Sequence record: PQ464595.1
Direction: 5' to 3' (one strand)
Length of the DNA stretch: 64,000 nucleotides
Both the position numbers and the translations under genes were made by a program. The notes below the pieces were generated by a model, which was not told the origin of the DNA, did no database searches, and worked only from the letters and a program-made list of their open reading frames with translations. This document shows positions 3,285-30,718 of the stretch, in pieces (position 1 is the first letter of the stretch; each line of letters begins with the position of its first letter).

Positions 3285-4249
3285 TTACCTTATTTTAGTT
3301 TTCCTGAATCCTTGAACTCCTTCGAGTTTGTTGATCTCACGAACAACTTCTTCTACTGAGTCGAAGATTCGGGATTTATTACCACTGTACATCACTTCAC
3401 CATTTTTAGTGATACAGTATCCCCAGCCACCAGAACCATGTTCACGAGAAACCCCATAAGGACTCGGTGGTAATGCAGCTTCAGGGTTGACTACCTGGTT
3501 GAATAACCGTGCGGAAGTCTTTTTATTCATTACGTAAACAATACAAATGGTAATAAACGCAATGAGACAACAGAATAGCAATACTTGAATATCACTCATG
3601 ATATTAATCCAATGTTGTTACACGAACACGATCAAGTTTTTCATAAACATTCATCTGGTTTAAAGCGGATTTTAAATCCAGATAAACATCAAAAGCACCT
3701 TGAGTTCCGGCAATATTGATATACTTATCATTTTTCAAAATAGTATACCCGTATTGACCATTATTACTTTTAGCACGTTTTAGTGTATATGGGCTTTCTG
3801 GTAAATCAGATTCTGGATTATCATGAACCCGTACCGTTTTTATATAAATGTCTGCGGCAATTCGCTTCACATTAAAATAAGTGAGACAAGCAGCACAGAA
3901 CATAACGATTGCGGCAATTAATAGAGGATGCATATTACACCACCTTAGTATGTGTATAACCTTCCAACTGCTCTAGCTCATTCAGTGATGTTTGAGCTTC
4001 TTTCGCAGTACTGAAACGCCGATCCACATGCATTGTATTACCTTTATAGATGTAATACAGGTCTTTGTTTTGATATGTATTCCAGTATCGTGCGATACGA
4101 TACGGAGACTGTTTGAGTTCACCAGGTTTAGGTTCTTCTACTAAACGAACATAAAGAATACTGGCAATCCTAAGATAGCCAAAGTACGAAAGCATCGCAG
4201 CCAACAAAAGCATAGTAGATACGATAAGCAAAACAATATTAGTCGTCAT
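3285..4249 (-). CDS. three tandem paralogous membrane-anchored proteins (3935-4249, 3604-3933, 3285-3599)
   Basis: Each 104-109 aa, N-terminal TM helix, shared SPY motif and A..(S/E)(L/I)N..E.(L) tail. Confidence 0.75.
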
Positions 4250-4554
4250 ATTATGCTTTCCCGTTCAGTACTGAACAATACCACTGAAGTAATTCAAGGT
4301 ACGCTTGTTCTTCGTAATTACGTTCTTTGATAGAACGCATCGCTCGCATATCATCAATGATCCATTGTTCCGGTTTCATCTTCATCGTCCTCTATAGGTG
4401 AATCCAAATCAACTTCAACACCAGCAGTGAGTTCTTTAATGTGATTCCACATTTCAGTACTGACTGGTACGAGGTTTTCAGGATGTTCATCAATATCTTT
4501 GGATAAAAAATCCAAGAATTTTTCTTCGGTGCTTTTCATATGTACCTTAAAAGT

Positions 4555-6052: not shown

Positions 6053-6770
6053 ACTGACTTATTCGATTATTTCAGCATATGGCAAGAACGGATGTTCAGT
6101 ACCATCATCTAAATGATGTGCTTCTTTTTCAGTACTTCCCCAATCGTAAAGGAACATACCATCAACCCACATTGCTCGTTCAACAGTACCGAATACTTTA
6201 TACCAACGAGCTTGTTTCATTTGATGCTTAGGTATTACTCGGAAAGTAGTATCTTCAGCAATTGGTTCAAATACATCATGAACATTATCATCTTCTGGAT
6301 GCTTAATAGTCATGTTGTGTTCATCACCGTACCATTCAGTTTGTACGAAATGGAATTTGTATCCATCCCATACAGCTTCAGTAGTACTTCTAGATTTTCC
6401 GATATACTTTACACCAGGAACTAAATGACTTTTAGGAATCATTTCTTCTTAGCCTTATGCTTAGCGATATTGTTTTGAATATCGTTATAGTAAAGTACTT
6501 TACCACGTGGACCACCATCTTGATTATGACGTTTACGTGCTGAGCTAGTATGTTGATTACCAGCACCAAGTTTATCACACCAACGCATCATCTCACGACA
6601 TATCCATCCAATATCTGAACGGAGTTCACAAGCCATTTCATCACTGAATTTACCATTAACAAATAGTCTTGCATGCCATTGATTCTTAATCTTAGTTACT
6701 TTAATGTCTGTTTCTGATTCAGTACTTAAAAGCATTTGTCGATTACGTTTCATCTTGGTTCCTTAATATT

Positions 6771-6847
6771 TGTCTGCGTGAGAGGATTCGAACCTCTGAC
6801 CCGATGCATCCAAAGCACCCACTCTGACCAGGCTGAGCTACACACAG
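6771..6847 (-). tRNA. tRNA-Pro(TGG)
   Basis: Cloverleaf, loop TTTGGAT, C1-G72, A73. Confidence 0.95.
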
Positions 6848-6855
6848 AATTTGTT

Positions 6856-6931
6856 TGTCCTTGTTACAAGATTCGAACTTGTGACTTCCACCGTGTAAAG
6901 ATGGCACTCTAACCAACTGAGTTAAACAAGG
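6856..6931 (-). tRNA. tRNA-Val(TAC)
   Basis: Cloverleaf, loop TTTACAC. Confidence 0.93.
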
Positions 6932-6933
6932 TT

Positions 6934-7009
6934 TGTCCGTGTGGAAGGATTTGAACCTTCGACCCCTCCGCCCCAAACGGAGTACTCTACCAAACTGAGC
7001 CACACACGG
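6934..7009 (-). tRNA. tRNA-Pro(TGG), second copy
   Basis: Cloverleaf, loop TTTGGGG. Confidence 0.93.
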
Positions 7010-7026
7010 AATGTGTTACTAAGAAC

Positions 7027-7055
7027 ATTATACCACATTTTTTGATGCCGTTTCA
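7027..7055 (-). promoter_or_regulatory. TGAAACG-class promoter
   Basis: TGAAACG-N16-TATAAT, with TGG immediately before the -10; same spacing at 8 other sites. Confidence 0.75.
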
Positions 7056-7073
7056 TGTTCTTAGTGTGATTTT

Positions 7074-7508
7074 TTAAGCTGTTTCTTCAGCTTCTTCTTC
7101 AGTACCGTACAACTCATTAAGTTTAGCAAGGTACTTAATATAGCGGTGTTCTAAGAATCCCAAATCATATTGAGTACTAATCTGGAACATCCACTCTGGA
7201 GTAATATCATAATTGATATTGAACTCATATTCAGAACCCCAATTGGATTCCGTCAGGTTTTTCTTTTCTCTGTAATGGCGACCAACCCAAACACTCATAT
7301 GTTCTGGATGACAAGTCACAATAGTTCTTGAATCATCCTGGTGTACAGTAATAGCCAACTGGTCTATCATATTTGCTTCAATAGATAGTGTATTACCTTG
7401 AAATAGTACTGCTTTCTTGACGAACAAGAAGTCATATATAGTACTTCTGTCCAGTTCATTTACTTCAGTATAGACTTTAAATTTCTGTACTAATGTCTTT
7501 GCTGCCAT
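7074..7508 (-). CDS. hypothetical protein, EEWxFQxST paralog family
   Basis: C-terminal ITPEWMFQISTQ motif. Confidence 0.7.
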   Translation of the reverse strand: MAAKTLVQKFKVYTEVNELDRSTIYDFLFVKKAVLFQGNTLSIEANMIDQLAITVHQDDSRTIVTCHPEHMSVWVGRHYREKKNLTESNWGSEYEFNINYDITPEWMFQISTQYDLGFLEHRYIKYLAKLNELYGTEEEAEETA

Positions 7509-14212: not shown

Positions 14213-14336
14213 TGCGAGAAAGGTTGGACTCGAACCAACGACCAGGCCATTAAAAGTGGATGAAGTATGGTTGCTGAGAAATTACATTACAGTAATTTTT
14301 GGGTTCTACCTGCTCTACCAACTGAGCTACTTTCTC
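14213..14336 (-). tRNA. tRNA-Lys(TTT) interrupted by a 49-nt CAGCAA insert (14260-14308) in the anticodon stem
   Basis: Deleting the insert gives the perfect arm GGCCA-CTTTTAA-TGGCC; acceptor, D and T arms are intact. Confidence 0.75.
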
Positions 14337-18006: not shown

Positions 18007-20544
18007 TTACCACTCTACGCCTACACCAGCACCCCACAGTACTTCAGACTGAGTGTTAGTACTGACAGATACCTTAGTGGTGACACTTTCGCTTACACGA
18101 GCACTGAAGCCCACAGCTACTGCTTGTTCACCATCATAACCACCAATACCCGCACCTACAGATACGTTGCCGTTCTGAGTTACCTGTGGGATGTTTGCCA
18201 TCGCACCAGCACCAGCGATACCAGCACTTGCTACCTTACGATTATCACCAATACGTTTATCAATGTCTGAGAAACGGCGGTTCGTTTGGTTTTCGAAGTT
18301 AGATACACGCTTTTCAACAGAACCAATACGGTTAGTATTGCTGGTGATACGTTCATCGTGTTGTACTAACGTAGCATCGTTAGAATCGATCCGGCTGGAC
18401 AACTTAGCATCAGCAGATTTGCGTGACGCAGTTTCACTTGCCAGTTCTTTCTTACTCGCCTTAGTTGCGATAACCTTATCCTGATTGGAATCAGTTACAG
18501 CCTGGTCAGATTTGTTTTTGTCGATATTAGCTTTCAGGGCATTATCCGCATTGGCACGAGTACTAGACTCAGTATCAATGTTCGCCTGAAGGTTTTTATC
18601 GGCGTTCTGACGTGCCACGGTTTCACTTGCCAGTTCTTTCTTACTTGCCTTAGTTGCGATAACCTTATCCTGATCGGAATCGGTTACTGCTTGGTCGGCT
18701 TTGTTCTTGGCGATGTTTGCTTTCAGGGCAGTGTCACCAGCGATACGGTTATCAGTTTCAGCACTGAGAGCCTTATCTTGTGTAGCATCAGTTACAGCTT
18801 GATCCGCTTTGTTCTGATCAATATTGTTCTTCAACGCAGTATCGGCGGTAGCACGAGTTTGGGCTTCAGAATCAATATTGGATTGAAGTACTTTGTCAGC
18901 ATCTTTACGGGCTGCTACTTCTTTATTCAGATCAGCTTTGTCAGCTTTAGTTACAGCAAGACCAACAATCGCAGCATCCTGAACGGCATCGTGAACAGCT
19001 TGCTTAGCTTTATCAACAGCGTAGGTAGATTTATCTACTTTACTGTCAATTGCGGCATTTTGCTTCGCGTCGGTTTTTGCTTGGTCAGATTTGTTTTTGT
19101 CGATATTAGCCTGTAACTGTTTATCAGCATCAGAACGAGTCTTTGCTTCATCACTCAATGCTTTGTCTTGCTTAGCATCAGTTTTGGCTTGAGCCGCTTT
19201 GTTCTGATCGATATTGTTCTTCAACGCAGTATCAGCTTTTTGACGATCAGTTACTTCTTTACCAATCGCAGCGTTTTGTGCGTTATCAGTACTGGCCTGG
19301 TCTGATACTGCTTTATTGATCTTGTCATCCAGTGCTTTATCACCTTTGACACGATCCGCAGTTTCTTTGTTCAGATCGGACTTATCAGCTTTTGATACTT
19401 CAAGGCCAATAATCGCACCATCTTGTAATGCGTCATGGATACCTTGAACTGCCTTATCAACAGCATAGGTAGACTTGTCTACTTTACCATTGATCGCCTT
19501 ATCTTGTTTGGAATCAGTTACAGCTTGTCCCGCTTTGTTCTGATCAATATTGTTCTTCAACGCAGTATCGGCATTCTGACGATCAGTTACTTCTTTATCC
19601 AATGCTGATTGGTCAGCTTTACCAGCGATAGCGGTATCTTGCTCAGCGTTTTTGGCTTCTACACCATCTAAACGTTCAGCATTGTTAATACTGCGAGAAT
19701 CAGTTACTTCCAACTGTTTGTTGGTTTCACGAATAGCACCTTCAGTTGAATCGGCACGATGTTCCAGATCAGTAGCACGGTTATTGGCAGTTTGGGCTGC
19801 GTCTTGTACCGCATTGATATGTTCATCTTGACCTGAATCACGAGTGGCCTGGGTATCTTTGTCAACTTTGGTATTCAGGCTGGCATCAGTTTCAGCTTTA
19901 TTAGCATCAACTTTATTGTCAACATCAGTGATCTTCTTGCCATTATCAAGTACTTGTGGGATTAACCCATAAACAGTACTTAACGCATTGTTGGCAGTCG
20001 CACGACCTTCAACCGCAATATCAAACGCATGATCAGTTTTCACTGAAACATCATTTAACGCAGTTTTATCAGCTTTAGAGTCAATAGCTGTATCCTGGGC
20101 AGAGTCACGTGCGGCCTGAGTATCTTTGTTGACCAGGTTAGAGGTATCGGCATCTTTACCATCTGCCCCATCTTTACCCGGATCACCTTTATCGCCTTTG
20201 TCACCTTTATCACCCTTATCACCTTTGGTTGGTGAAGTATTGCCACCACCAGTACTGATAGAGTTATTAAAGTCGTCCAAGGACGAAGGAACATTACCAG
20301 TTTTTAACGAATCTAGCAAAGCTTTTGCTTCTTCTGCTGTACCATTGAAACGGTTGTTGAACGTGGAAATGAAACGTGCGTCGTTCCAATTTCCGTTTTC
20401 TTTGGCGTTCATCAAGTCCTGAACAGCCGGACCCCATTGATCGCCAGATGATTTCAACGATACGGCGGCGTTAGCCATATTAACCGTCATCACAGAAACC
20501 ATTAAGGCTACTGCCAGCATAATCTTTTTCATTTTGTCACCCAA
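18007..20544 (-). CDS. YadA-like trimeric autotransporter adhesin (signal peptide, collagen-like GXY repeats, repetitive coiled-coil stalk, C-terminal anchor)
   Basis: GDKGDKGDKGDKGDPGKDGADGKD; tandem stalk repeats; C-terminal GIAGAGAMA..PQ..GAGIGGY.GEQAVAVG...GAGVGVEW beta-barrel anchor. Confidence 0.9.
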   Translation of the reverse strand: MGDKMKKIMLAVALMVSVMTVNMANAAVSLKSSGDQWGPAVQDLMNAKENGNWNDARFISTFNNRFNGTAEEAKALLDSLKTGNVPSSLDDFNNSISTGGGNTSPTKGDKGDKGDKGDKGDPGKDGADGKDADTSNLVNKDTQAARDSAQDTAIDSKADKTALNDVSVKTDHAFDIAVEGRATANNALSTVYGLIPQVLDNGKKITDVDNKVDANKAETDASLNTKVDKDTQATRDSGQDEHINAVQDAAQTANNRATDLEHRADSTEGAIRETNKQLEVTDSRSINNAERLDGVEAKNAEQDTAIAGKADQSALDKEVTDRQNADTALKNNIDQNKAGQAVTDSKQDKAINGKVDKSTYAVDKAVQGIHDALQDGAIIGLEVSKADKSDLNKETADRVKGDKALDDKINKAVSDQASTDNAQNAAIGKEVTDRQKADTALKNNIDQNKAAQAKTDAKQDKALSDEAKTRSDADKQLQANIDKNKSDQAKTDAKQNAAIDSKVDKSTYAVDKAKQAVHDAVQDAAIVGLAVTKADKADLNKEVAARKDADKVLQSNIDSEAQTRATADTALKNNIDQNKADQAVTDATQDKALSAETDNRIAGDTALKANIAKNKADQAVTDSDQDKVIATKASKKELASETVARQNADKNLQANIDTESSTRANADNALKANIDKNKSDQAVTDSNQDKVIATKASKKELASETASRKSADAKLSSRIDSNDATLVQHDERITSNTNRIGSVEKRVSNFENQTNRRFSDIDKRIGDNRKVASAGIAGAGAMANIPQVTQNGNVSVGAGIGGYDGEQAVAVGFSARVSESVTTKVSVSTNTQSEVLWGAGVGVEW

Positions 20545-21365: not shown

Positions 21366-21995
21366 TTAGTAACCTGAGACATTGAACAGTGTACCGTTCT
21401 CGTCGAAGTACGTGACTTCATCAATACTACCAGACGCGGCAACTTGATGATCGCAGGTGTGATCACCCTGCCCTTCAAAACGAATTTCAGTACCTTCAAT
21501 GGTGAAGCGACATTGATAACCATTAACAACAATAGGAATCGCTGCTTCAGGAGCAATATTATCTTCACCGCTCGGTATTTCGTATTTAGTACCGTCACAT
21601 TCCAGGATCGTAACGTCTTCGTTCGCTTCAACAACTGTGCCGAACTTCATCTGACGCTCGATATAGTACTTGTGATGTACTTCATTAACGAAGTGTAACT
21701 TAGCACCCACAATTGGAATACCAGTATCTTCATTGATGTTAGTACTGTTCCAGTCTTCATCGTTCATGATGAATGGTGCTGGATGATAACTATCATCATC
21801 CATCCAATCCAGACCAGTACTGATACCTTCCATAATACGGTCAATCAGTTCTTCTTTGTTCTGAGATTCTGGAAGTGTAAAGCTGTATGTTTCGTTTGTG
21901 TATCCATCAGCATCACCATGCATGAATTCCAGTTTAACACGTAAGGTGTTTTTAGGATTAGATGACGGTACTGCTGGTGTGAGTTTAACTGCCAT
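21366..21995 (-). CDS. hypothetical protein (FMHGDAD family; paralog of 32360-32767)
   Basis: Shared KxxFMHGDADxY motif and VTYFD.NG C-terminus. Confidence 0.75.
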   Translation of the reverse strand: MAVKLTPAVPSSNPKNTLRVKLEFMHGDADGYTNETYSFTLPESQNKEELIDRIMEGISTGLDWMDDDSYHPAPFIMNDEDWNSTNINEDTGIPIVGAKLHFVNEVHHKYYIERQMKFGTVVEANEDVTILECDGTKYEIPSGEDNIAPEAAIPIVVNGYQCRFTIEGTEIRFEGQGDHTCDHQVAASGSIDEVTYFDENGTLFNVSGY

Positions 21996-22285
21996 TCGGG
22001 AGTACCTTCTTAACAGAGTTAATTATGGTTTCAACAGTGTCGCCAATTACTTTGTCCAGTTTAGACATTTCACCAGCTTCATAATGATACTTTGGTTTAC
22101 CATCTTTGCCAAGTACTGTGTAACGATCATACGCAGTCGGGTTAATCGACTTAGACGATTGTTCACGAGCAACAGCAGGGTCAACCATAGTTACACCAGT
22201 ATAGGTGTAATCTTTCAGTTCTTGTACTTTCTGTTTAAAGTACTTTTTCAGTTCTTCGACAATATACATAATATATCCTCAAGTA

Positions 22286-22404
22286 TGCGGTGAGTACAGG
22301 AATCGAACCTGTGACTTCGGCGTGAAAGGCAATTGTTTGATTGCTGTTAGATTCAGTACTGGAATCCATTTTTTTACGCTATTTTACCACTAAACTAACT
22401 CACC
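22286..22404 (-). tRNA. tRNA-Glu(TTC) interrupted by a 46-nt CAGCAA insert (22331-22376) at 29/30
   Basis: Deleting the insert gives GCGGC-CTTTCAC-GCCGA; acceptor GGTGAGT/ACTCACC, G73. Confidence 0.75.
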
Positions 22405-22410
22405 AGATTT

Positions 22411-22767
22411 TTAAGTGCGATTAGGACGTGAGTTTTTGATCAACTCAACACCCGCAGCAGTACAACGTTCAATTTGACCGTCATACAATTTCTCTACAAC
22501 GTCTTTATCAGAACTATGTAGATATATTTGTTTCAGTTTCGGGAAAGCATTACGCTTCAGACGGTGAGTTACCATCATCAGCAAATCAGCCCCCGTATGG
22601 GTACGATCACCCAGGAAGTTATCAAAGTGAAGTACTTCAATTTCTTCACTATTAGCGAAGATGAAGTTCTTTGCTTCCCACCACTCTTTCAGCCAAACAA
22701 TACCTTCTGATTGTTCAGCCGTTAAATGATTTTCAGGATTGCGAATATCGTCTACGTAAATTTTCAT
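22411..22767 (-). CDS. cyclic-phosphate-processing receiver (cREC)-like domain protein
   Basis: IYVDDIRNP...LHFDNFLG..TGADL...IYLHS pattern. Confidence 0.7.
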   Translation of the reverse strand: MKIYVDDIRNPENHLTAEQSEGIVWLKEWWEAKNFIFANSEEIEVLHFDNFLGDRTHTGADLLMMVTHRLKRNAFPKLKQIYLHSSDKDVVEKLYDGQIERCTAAGVELIKNSRPNRT

Positions 22768-23159
22768 TAGTAGTTATTCTCCTGACTATTGTTAATCAGT
22801 TCAACCCCAGCTTTAGCCAGTTCTTCCTTATAGTCTTCGATCATTTCTTCGACCATATCAGAATCAGAGGAATGAAGATAAATCTGTTTCAGATTTTTCC
22901 ATTCTTCTTTATCTCCCCACATACAATCACCAGCAACCATAAAGAACAAGTCTTTACCAGTTAGCGTTGGTTCATCCATGTAGTGATCGAAGTGAATCAC
23001 TTCCAGGGTGGCAGCATTTTCGATCAGGAAACGTTTTGCTTCCCACCATTCTTTGATCCAAACAATACCTTCGGCTTGTTCCGCATTCAGATAACGTGCT
23101 GGATCACGAATGTCGTCAATGTAAACTTTCGTGTTAGACATATTAACGCCCACCCTCAA
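22767..23159 (-). CDS. cyclic-phosphate-processing receiver (cREC)-like domain protein, tandem paralog
   Basis: VYIDDIRDP...IHFDHYM..TGKDL...IYLHS. Confidence 0.7.
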   Translation of the reverse strand: MRVGVNMSNTKVYIDDIRDPARYLNAEQAEGIVWIKEWWEAKRFLIENAATLEVIHFDHYMDEPTLTGKDLFFMVAGDCMWGDKEEWKNLKQIYLHSSDSDMVEEMIEDYKEELAKAGVELINNSQENNY

Positions 23160-23441
23160 CAGTTAAATGATGACCACCAGCAGTGGCAATGAAACGGTCA
23201 ACACCACAACCACGCGGATCAATTTCGGAAACTTTGAAATCAGCTTCACCGAGATCTACGTAAGTAGTAGTACCGAAAGTTCGGTCAACCCGTAATTCGT
23301 ATACGTGGTCTTCCTGAAGTTCCTGAACACCATTCGCTGGATGTGACTCTGGAACGATGTGACCGATAATGATACCGCCAGGCATAACCTGGATACGTGC
23401 TGTCATAGCCATTTCTGTACCCTCATTGATTAAGAGGTAGT

Positions 23442-23470
23442 ACTATATCATGCCACGTTAGGGCTGTCAA
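23442..23470 (-). promoter_or_regulatory. sigma70-like promoter upstream of the cREC/tRNA-Glu unit
   Basis: TTGACA-N17-TATAGT. Confidence 0.7.
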
Positions 23471-23627
23471 GGACGTTTTAACGGTTTAGGACGAATGCTA
23501 TCATTGTACAACCCACGGATGTACAAATATGTACTAAAACGACATACTCCGAGTTTGTACATTTCTTCAGTATCTTTCATGATACCATATAGTCTAGAAT
23601 TCAAACGTTTCATTCGGTTTCCTTAAT

Positions 23628-23707
23628 TAGTGCGAGGGGATGGACTTGAACCACCGACACGGAGTTACCCTAAGATAATCTTGCTCTACCATCTGAGCTA
23701 CCCTCGC
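23628..23707 (-). tRNA. tRNA-like gene with aberrant anticodon arm (anticodon not assignable)
   Basis: Perfect acceptor GCGAGGG/CCCTCGC, D and T arms; anticodon/variable region about 5 nt too long with irregular pairing (AGATTATCTTAGGGTAACTCCG). Confidence 0.6.
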
Positions 23708-24244: not shown

Positions 24245-24359
24245 TGTGGAGAGGGGTGGATTCGAACCACCGTACCGTTCTTATGAATGAAATTTATGGA
24301 TGCCGTAAGATTCCATCTGGAATCGCTTTTCGTGTCCTGGGCCGCTAGACGACCTCTCC
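24245..24359 (-). tRNA. tRNA-CAT-like gene interrupted by a 39-nt CAGCAA-family insert (24292-24330; core CGGCAT)
   Basis: Deleting the insert gives CGTTC-ATTCATAA-GAACG (8-nt loop); the insert has a GATTCC AGAT GGAATC stem. Confidence 0.6.
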
Positions 24360-30607: not shown

Positions 30608-30718
30608 GGTGCTAAGAACAGGATTCGAACCTGTAAGGAAACCTCGCGGTACTTCCCACGTCCTATTGTCGCTTTCGCTATCGTCAGACGCTACGTTTAC
30701 CAATTCCGTCATCTCAGC
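30608..30718 (-). ncRNA. class-II tRNA scaffold with a 24-nt expanded anticodon loop
   Basis: GCTGAGA/TCTTAGC, Leu-like D arm, GCGTC/GACGT stem, loop contains GC-GAAA-GC, long variable hairpin, T arm. Confidence 0.7.

Follow-up and report, generated by a model that had tools for sequence, protein, structure and literature searches.

Tandem cREC-family genes beside an insert-bearing tRNA-like gene in the tRNA island of Erwinia phage Kaldavass

The name cREC, for cyclic-phosphate processing receiver domain, goes back to Iyer, Anand, Burroughs and Aravind (Viruses 2021; PMC7824862), and cleavage of cyclic phosphates is the published prediction for the family (PMC7824862, PMC9503650). Both studies are works of comparative genomics, which in their passages on cREC describe the domain as experimentally uncharacterised and place it in fusions or operons with Nudix, Sir2, 2H, RNA ligases or kinases. 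Two other described systems invite comparison, namely the heal-and-seal enzymes Pnkp and Rnl1 of phage T4 (PMC3592404), and the bacterial rsr (Ro60)-Y RNA-rtcBA operons (PMC7790460). Here we consider a tandem pair of genes, cREC-A and cREC-B, from a 64,000-nucleotide stretch of DNA (hereafter the window) of Erwinia phage Kaldavass, where the pair lies directly upstream of a gene for a transfer RNA (tRNA)-shaped RNA that carries an insert. An earlier note on this DNA had stated the published prediction correctly, while crediting it to Burroughs and Aravind alone rather than to the four authors of PMC7824862, and had proposed that the pair may heal RNA ends in the removal of the insert or the repair of the tRNA. 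We find that the pair belongs to the cREC family, and its position 5' of the insert-bearing tRNA-like gene seems to reflect the inherited gene order of a tRNA island rather than dedicated insert removal.

Both proteins are genuine members of the cREC family. The Pfam hidden Markov model (HMM) cREC_REC (PF20274) matches cREC-B with 46.3 bits and cREC-A with 36.6 bits, both above the 27-bit gathering cut-off, which bears out the family assignment of the earlier note; a six-frame PF20274 search of the whole record gives the same result, and both proteins match phrog_1479. They are intact paralogues with 51% identity (BLASTP E 2e-43). Like the rest of the family they combine the HMM match with a predicted receiver fold, conserved aspartates, a phage origin and the lack of a histidine kinase in the contexts examined; they differ from the contexts described for cREC in being standalone and tandem, in lying within a tRNA island and in having neighbours without assigned function. 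The orthologues from Pectobacterium phage CBB and from pEa_SNUABM_50 are already named 'Cyclic-phosphate processing Receiver domain' proteins in public databases, and the Kaldavass pair therefore extends a known, uncharacterised family rather than being a new kind of gene. Enzymatic activity, substrate and pairing are predictions from sequence, and among the possibilities weighed below we lean, with some reserve, towards reading the pair as an old tandem unit of standalone cREC proteins that would act as a cyclic-phosphate phosphoesterase, its adjacency to the tRNA-like gene being inherited.

The locus comprises the following features, in window coordinates (which equal PQ464595.1 record coordinates minus 62,000):

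23442..23470, minus strand: sigma-70-like promoter-like site, TTGACA, 17 nucleotides, TATAGT, plus a TG extension; 11 of 12 consensus matches.
23143..23412, minus strand: first open reading frame (ORF) of the block, 89 amino acids, phrog_25454, no assigned function; its stop lies 1 nucleotide before the cREC-A ATG.
22767..23141, minus strand: cREC-A, 124 amino acids; PF20274 36.6 bits; phrog_1479; DD, D and LHSS motifs.
22411..22767, minus strand: cREC-B, 118 amino acids; PF20274 46.3 bits; phrog_1479; AlphaFold2 model.
22288..22404, minus strand: tRNA-shaped RNA gene, 117 nucleotides, with an insert of 46-47 nucleotides; Rfam tRNA 47.7 bits, 47-nucleotide insertion.
21985..22269, minus strand: next downstream ORF, 94 amino acids, phrog_23324, no assigned function; recognised as an ORF with a phrog match.

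Over positions 21900-23700 the window is 100% identical to Kaldavass (PQ464595.1, 366,556 bp), a GAP32/CBB-like jumbo phage, and our whole-genome statements on this phage rest on that identical GenBank record. This segment shares 88% identity with Xanthomonas phage XbC2, a member of the genus Mimasvirus, and ~75-78% identity with Cronobacter phage GAP32, Erwinia phage pEa_SNUABM_44 and Pectobacterium phage CBB, the last of which also belongs to Mimasvirus. The locus falls within a tRNA island of ~50 kb, which holds ~135 small coding genes, nearly all on the minus strand, and 33 annotated tRNA features.

The gene order given in the earlier note, with two paralogues ending 6 nucleotides (AAATCT) upstream of the insert-bearing tRNA-like gene and lying behind one promoter-like site, is indeed that of the sequence. 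Its start for cREC-A, a TTG at 23159, lies within the upstream ORF and is unlikely to be the true one; GenBank and the homologues use the ATG at 23141. The cREC-A stop and the cREC-B start overlap by one base (TAATG), and the pair is translationally coupled. The first ORF, the cREC pair and the tRNA-like gene are probably co-transcribed from one host-type promoter, as the note had held for the pair and the tRNA-like gene, and the ORF at 21985-22269 is probably on the same transcript; this is a reasonable inference because a promoter-like site lies upstream and no terminator-like site occurs on the coding strand from the promoter through the tRNA-like gene to that ORF. A promoter-like site is also present at the equivalent position in Serratia phage BF and in CBB. 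The first ORF has no match in Pfam, NCBIfam or PADLOC scans; XbC2 and BF have it annotated in the corresponding place, and an ORF of 65 amino acids in CBB and one of 93 amino acids in L010 (G and L numbers here and below are our own labels) correspond to it in position. Two more ORFs without assigned function lie downstream of the tRNA-like gene, and cREC-A, cREC-B and the three flanking ORFs gave zero PADLOC or NCBIfam matches.

The fold evidence comes from cREC-B alone of the two paralogues. Its AlphaFold2 model, for which 32 homologues were used, has a mean predicted local distance difference test (pLDDT) score of 92.8 and shows five strand-helix units in receiver order. In a structure search independent of Foldseek the top matches to it were almost all receiver domains, with CheY matched at Z 10.8 and a root-mean-square deviation (rmsd) of 2.7 A over 102 residues. 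CheY-like receivers as a group are the best structural matches (Z about 10, rmsd 2.7-3.3 A, ~100 residues) and have the acidic triad at the same strand ends. Foldseek agrees weakly, with response regulators on top at E about 3e-3, and the family profile found no match among the sequences of solved structures at E up to 10. In cREC-B numbering, D6, D7 and D49 are invariant or nearly so among the 32 homologues and are kept in both paralogues and in distant tandem copies; the residues conserved throughout the subfamily, again with both paralogues and the distant copies included, are D6, D7, R9, D49, G59, H84 and S85. Those of the pocket are placed after strand 1 (D6-D7), strand 3 (D49) and strand 4 (H84-S85). 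In contrast to CheY-like receivers, the site of the receiver Lys after strand 5 is variable (K, N, D, E, A), the nearly invariant residue there being Asn112, and His-Ser replaces Thr/Ser. Pfam Response_reg gives no match at E up to 1, and no histidine kinase or output domain is found in any gene neighbourhood examined; the marks of a two-component receiver, that is the Lys, the Thr/Ser and a partner kinase, are missing from cREC-A and cREC-B.

We picture the pair as small, divergent receiver-fold proteins that keep the receiver acidic pocket, dispensing with the receiver Lys and a histidine-kinase partner, and in which this Asp-centred pocket would carry out the chemistry. They might instead be non-hydrolases, such as receiver-like phospho-acceptors or binding or regulatory subunits (e.g. 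phosphorelay or phosphate-ligand decoys), diversified by duplication. The fold and acidic pocket are those of phospho-accepting receivers, and no catalytic activity of a cREC protein was found demonstrated in the literature; however, a new invariant His-Ser and an Arg are conserved whereas the receiver Lys that follows strand 5 is not, neither a histidine kinase nor an output domain occurs in the contexts examined, and the fusions known in the family are to enzymes such as Nudix. On this evidence we consider a non-hydrolytic role improbable.

Tandem sets of standalone cREC genes of the same subfamily recur in a further group of large phages, beyond Kaldavass and its relatives: two pairs are found in G002 (342 kb), one in G003 and one in the contig L008, and G004 combines a pair with a triple. 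These four are interrelated, and their flanking genes are unrelated to those of Kaldavass, with no neighbour in common. The lineages with tandem sets thus number at least two, Mimasvirus/Eneladusvirus and G002-G004, each of them rich in tRNA genes. In the phylogenetic tree the upstream copies form a clade with support of 99/96 and the downstream copies a less well resolved group (86/95), as separate orthologous groups, with the B copies of Mimasvirus and Eneladusvirus united in one 99/99 clade; as the tree groups the copies by position, the pairs are old and have kept their order. The Asp, Asp, His-Ser signature is kept in all tandem copies. Each set combines a more acidic copy, with a net charge of -6 to -16, and a less acidic one, at +4 to -6. 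The two values lie far apart in most sets and close together in G004a (-6 versus -5); in Kaldavass cREC-A is strongly acidic (net charge -15, isoelectric point 4.4) and cREC-B near neutral (-3, 5.9). The neighbours of the G002-G004 arrays are unassigned ORFs and mobile elements only, and no RNA-repair or NAD gene stands beside the tandem pairs, such genes being found elsewhere in the Kaldavass genome.

This recurrent acidic-plus-less-acidic layout, which we did not find in the cREC passages of PMC7824862 and PMC9503650 and which we offer as a modest new observation, suggests that the pair is the unit of function. It would be self-contained, working either as a heteromer or by division of labour, and in the latter case the acidic and the near-neutral paralogue could take successive steps, ring opening followed by removal of the monoester. 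Among the genes around the arrays, G003 has a HEARO RNA (106 bits) and an RRXRR-HNH (IscB-like) protein just downstream of its cREC pair (L026:5743-6053, 6137-7435), and G004 has a TnpB/Cas12f-like protein just upstream of a tandem pair (L027:2740-4383).

If the pair is a phosphoesterase unit, the substrate that we favour is RNA with 2',3'-cyclic phosphate ends. RNA ends are our first choice because cREC genes lie at or inside the tRNA array both here and in KVP40, because operon links of cREC to RNA ligases are reported in the relevant passages of PMC7824862, and because one tblastn match in Enterobacter phage FENT2 adjoins an Rnl1-type ligase gene. The same facts speak against an alternative in which the pair hydrolyses small molecules, e.g. 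to blunt host immune signalling, and its place in the tRNA island is incidental; the candidates would be signalling nucleotides or cyclic phosphates derived from nucleotides, among them ADP-ribose 1'',2''-cyclic phosphate, cyclic ADP-ribose isomers, 2',3'-cyclic nucleotides and cyclic oligonucleotides. A scan of the pair with defence and anti-defence profiles also found no match. Nevertheless this alternative is a serious rival, because a third cREC domain of the genome is fused to a NUDT16-like Nudix domain and has an Acb1-like neighbour, and because the charge of cREC-A is strongly negative. The third copy lies in a cassette of Sir2, Nudix-cREC and PIN-PhoH genes, in which a gene for 148 amino acids annotated 'RNA ligase' (L012:5792-6238, minus strand, corresponding to PQ464595.1 324291-324737) matches the anti-CBASS Acb1 family with 57 bits, a better match than that to the 2H family in general, and so hints at a possible further role of the cassette in dealing with cyclic-nucleotide signals. 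Moreover, the family is partly defined by NAD and ADP-ribose links in the cREC passages of PMC7824862 and PMC9503650, the proteins are small and acidic without an RNA-binding domain, and the tandem arrays sit in accessory regions among unassigned neighbours and mobile elements. We judge a small-molecule substrate unlikely, though by no means negligible.

With regard to the T4 system, the heal-and-seal enzymes occur, like the cREC pair, in tRNA-rich phages, and Kaldavass has its own complete T4-type kit, consisting of a Pnkp with a HAD phosphatase domain (157.8 bits) and an Rnl1 with its C-terminal domain, at these positions of the record:

345502-346428: Pnkp, ~260 kb from the cREC pair.
347143-348291: Rnl1, ~260 kb from the cREC pair.

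T4 Pnkp has the HAD DxDxT fold, in contrast to the receiver fold of the pair, which lacks a kinase or ligase domain and is not linked, as an end-healing gene of a Pnkp and Rnl1-type cassette would be, to a kinase and an RNA ligase. As Kaldavass encodes Pnkp and Rnl1, the cREC pair is not needed for the canonical pathway.

We now turn to the adjacency itself. The earlier note's proposal may be put as follows: the genes and the RNA form one cassette, in which the pair heals the 2',3'-cyclic phosphate ends left by excision of the insert, or repairs that RNA. In its favour, the direct adjacency is kept in Mimasvirus and Eneladusvirus, co-transcription is probable, and the chance of such a position within the island is ~2%, since of the ~127 minus-strand coding genes of the island ~25 immediately precede a tRNA on its 5' side, and only 3 (2.4%) so precede one with an insert. 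The arrangement, the 6-nucleotide gap included, is the same in XbC2, BF and Yersinia phage fHe-Yen9-04, and in CBB the order is likewise unchanged, the gap being annotated as 9 nucleotides. In BF the pair is orthologous (74% identity for B) and agrees with that of Kaldavass in order, 6-nucleotide spacing, upstream ORF and promoter position, whereas the adjoining tRNA body carries a UUU anticodon loop of the Lys type where Kaldavass has the Glu-type UUC. Finally, the Mimasvirus-like contig L010, which has an A-type cREC only, lacks cREC-B, the long RNA and the homologues of the next two ORFs together.

Several lines of evidence count against such a cassette. The 6-nucleotide gap was considered as a sign of coupling and rejected, because a spacing of 5-13 nucleotides from the upstream ORF stop is generic to the island (10 of the 31 tRNA-like genes in the window, among them ordinary tRNA-His, Asp, Glu, Leu and Ser). 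Adjacency of cREC and an insert-bearing tRNA was seen, in the contexts examined, in Mimasvirus and Eneladusvirus only, and as the whole island is collinear in these two genera it counts as one evolutionary event; synteny with interrupted tRNAs, which the earlier note had named as a check, therefore holds within that clade and fails in every context examined outside it. None of the nearest cREC relatives in other phages has an insert-bearing tRNA within 3.5-5 kb, and no such tRNA was found near the relatives L004, L007-L010, L024, L026 and L027; for the tandem pairs of L008, L024, L026 and L027, a tRNA of any kind is missing within 2.4-5 kb. The single cREC of Klebsiella phage Eowyn (48% identity) has no tRNA within 3.5 kb of it, and the whole 265-kb genome is without a tRNA gene. 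The metagenomic contigs L007 and L009 likewise carry single copies, and the latter has no tRNA although two other genes of the island are common to it and Kaldavass. On L007 a GyrA/ParC-like gene precedes the cREC, and 12 nucleotides after it begins an ORF of 137 amino acids (3864-4277) with a weak match to an alanyl-tRNA synthetase family (tRNA-synt_2c).

The RNA itself also bears on the proposal. The insert of the RNA at 22288-22404, a gene that ARAGORN does not detect, consists of a hairpin, GGATTC...GAATC, followed by AACAGCAA, and the anticodon loop is of the Glu type, UUC. Orthologous insert-bearing RNAs lie at L002:2889-3003, L003:2704-2825, L005:3864-3985 and L006:3867-3987. Throughout the orthologues the hairpin-plus-ACAGCAA module of the insert is conserved and the anticodon loop is not, the latter being UUC in Kaldavass and XbC2, UUU (Lys-type) in CBB and BF, and neither in Yen9-04; a loop that varies while the module stays constant argues against a decoding tRNA that needs splicing. 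Excision of the insert is unsupported: contigs over 22200-23500 from four wastewater or aquatic 'RNA-Seq' runs, which are probably DNA and so uninformative on splicing, carry the insert intact and show no joint across it, one contig being identical over 22231-22435. Protein-dependent splicing of a tRNA intron likewise finds no support, in that RtcB was not found in three genomes and no joined form was seen, the latter a weak test given the probable DNA. Nor did a splicing endonuclease, which such a system also requires, come to light, although no search aimed at it was made. The genome has at least four over-long tRNA-like genes (14215-14336, 22288-22404, 24247-24359 and 30610-30718), of which only that at 22288-22404 has cREC neighbours, the other three insert-bearing ones being without them. 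The RNA gene at 24247-24359 (minus strand, 113 nucleotides, 'tRNA-OTHER'), ~1.8 kb upstream of the cREC pair, has the module GATTCC...GGAATCT.AC.GCA in common with 22288-22404, and begins 8 nucleotides past an ORF of 76 amino acids without assigned function, not past a cREC gene.

A phyletic comparison of 13 hand-picked phage lineages, based on PF20274, DUF2828 (Ro60-like) and tRNA hits of at least 100 nucleotides, with counts that ignore relatedness, points to a different partner. The hairpin-plus-NCNGCA(A) module is also present in KVP40 and Aeromonas phage Aeh1, and it tracks DUF2828, being found in 3/3 lineages with that domain versus 0/10 without; its distribution against cREC is 2/5 lineages with versus 1/8 without (p 0.31). 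Aeh1 has the module RNA and DUF2828 without cREC, and conversely standalone cREC is accompanied by neither DUF2828 nor the module in Eowyn, G002-G004 and Agrobacterium phage Atu_ph07, so that the module and the cREC subfamily each occur without the other. The long tRNA-like genes of Atu_ph07 and G002-G004 carry unrelated inserts; those of Atu_ph07 (323905-324023, 68159-68280 and 335108-335213; L044, L045 and L046) have inserts that differ from the Ro60-type module and are apparently in or near the anticodon loop.

The bacterial operons that link Ro60 and Y-RNA genes with the cyclic-phosphate enzymes RtcA and RtcB (PMC7790460) lend the cassette proposal some plausibility, since in them too a tRNA-like or Ro-type RNA gene stands beside enzymes of cyclic-phosphate ends. 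Kaldavass does encode a Ro60-like protein (DUF2828 plus DUF7788; L013:2663-6090, corresponding to PQ464595.1 278662-282089). However, in contrast to the rsr-rtcBA operons, this gene is ~195 kb from the cREC pair and near a different RNA ligase, the second of the genome, which has the PHA02142 OB-fold domain and from which only two small ORFs separate it. The positional and phyletic coupling to DUF2828 that would mark a Ro60/Y-RNA-like module is not seen for the cREC pair; it is the Ro60-like gene and its nearby RNA ligase that parallel the bacterial rsr-rtcB linkage, and by this analogy they would be better candidate partners of the module-bearing RNAs than the cREC pair. RtcB was also considered as a partner of the pair and rejected, being absent from Kaldavass, XbC2 and CBB, the three clade genomes searched. 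With the generic spacing, adjacency confined to one clade, Eowyn and Aeh1, the variable anticodon loop, and a Pnkp and Rnl1 of the phage's own far from the pair, healing or removal of this insert by the pair is the least probable of the readings considered here, and the proposal of the earlier note is not upheld in this respect.

Some observations weigh against the reading that we favour, an old self-contained phosphoesterase unit whose adjacency is inherited. No experimental assay of any cREC protein was found in the literature, and chemistry and substrate are therefore predictions. The net charge of -15 on cREC-A is unusual for an RNA-binding protein. Adjacency kept in two genera, at a positional chance of ~2% in the island, leaves room for some functional coupling. 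At the level of whole genomes, over-long tRNA-like genes, whatever their insert, also accompany standalone cREC more often than would be expected (4/5 versus 1/8 lineages, one-sided p 0.03), a signal that weakens to p 0.18 if Nudix-fused cREC is counted. We do not claim this association, given the hand-picked lineages, the unrelated inserts in Atu_ph07 and G002-G004 and the result of the other way of counting. A broader role is also conceivable: the pair might be a heteromeric two-step end-healing enzyme, one paralogue opening the 2',3'-cyclic phosphate and the other removing the monoester, that protects phage tRNAs and tRNA-shaped RNAs from host anticodon nucleases, with one client RNA co-transcribed in Mimasvirus and Eneladusvirus. 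To this we attach only a small probability.

Other features of the island deserve mention. The tRNA at 23630-23707 (minus strand) has an enlarged anticodon arm: 21 nucleotides are aligned by Rfam where 17 would be expected, and ARAGORN, which reads four bases ('ttag') as the anticodon, assigns no amino acid; the gene is annotated as tRNA-Lys in Kaldavass and its XbC2 orthologue as tRNA-Glu, and it may be another non-standard tRNA of the island. Just downstream of the locus, a gene at 18007-20544 (minus strand) encodes a protein of 845 amino acids annotated as an adhesin, with coiled-coil repeats and a YadA-like C-terminal anchor; a protein with a YadA anchor is also encoded on the related contig L010.

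For the question of the insert-bearing tRNA-like RNAs our result is mainly negative yet useful, in that the cREC genes provide no evidence for the inserts being introns. For the family it is of wider interest. Among the domains of large phages for which processing of RNA ends or ADP-ribose is predicted, cREC is one of the more common, with a reported frequency of up to 18% in jumbo phages (PMC9503650). The Kaldavass pair is small, soluble-looking and well modelled, and would therefore be a convenient first target for biochemistry, for which the recurrent acidic-plus-less-acidic tandem layout supplies a concrete hypothesis, namely that the two proteins work as a unit.

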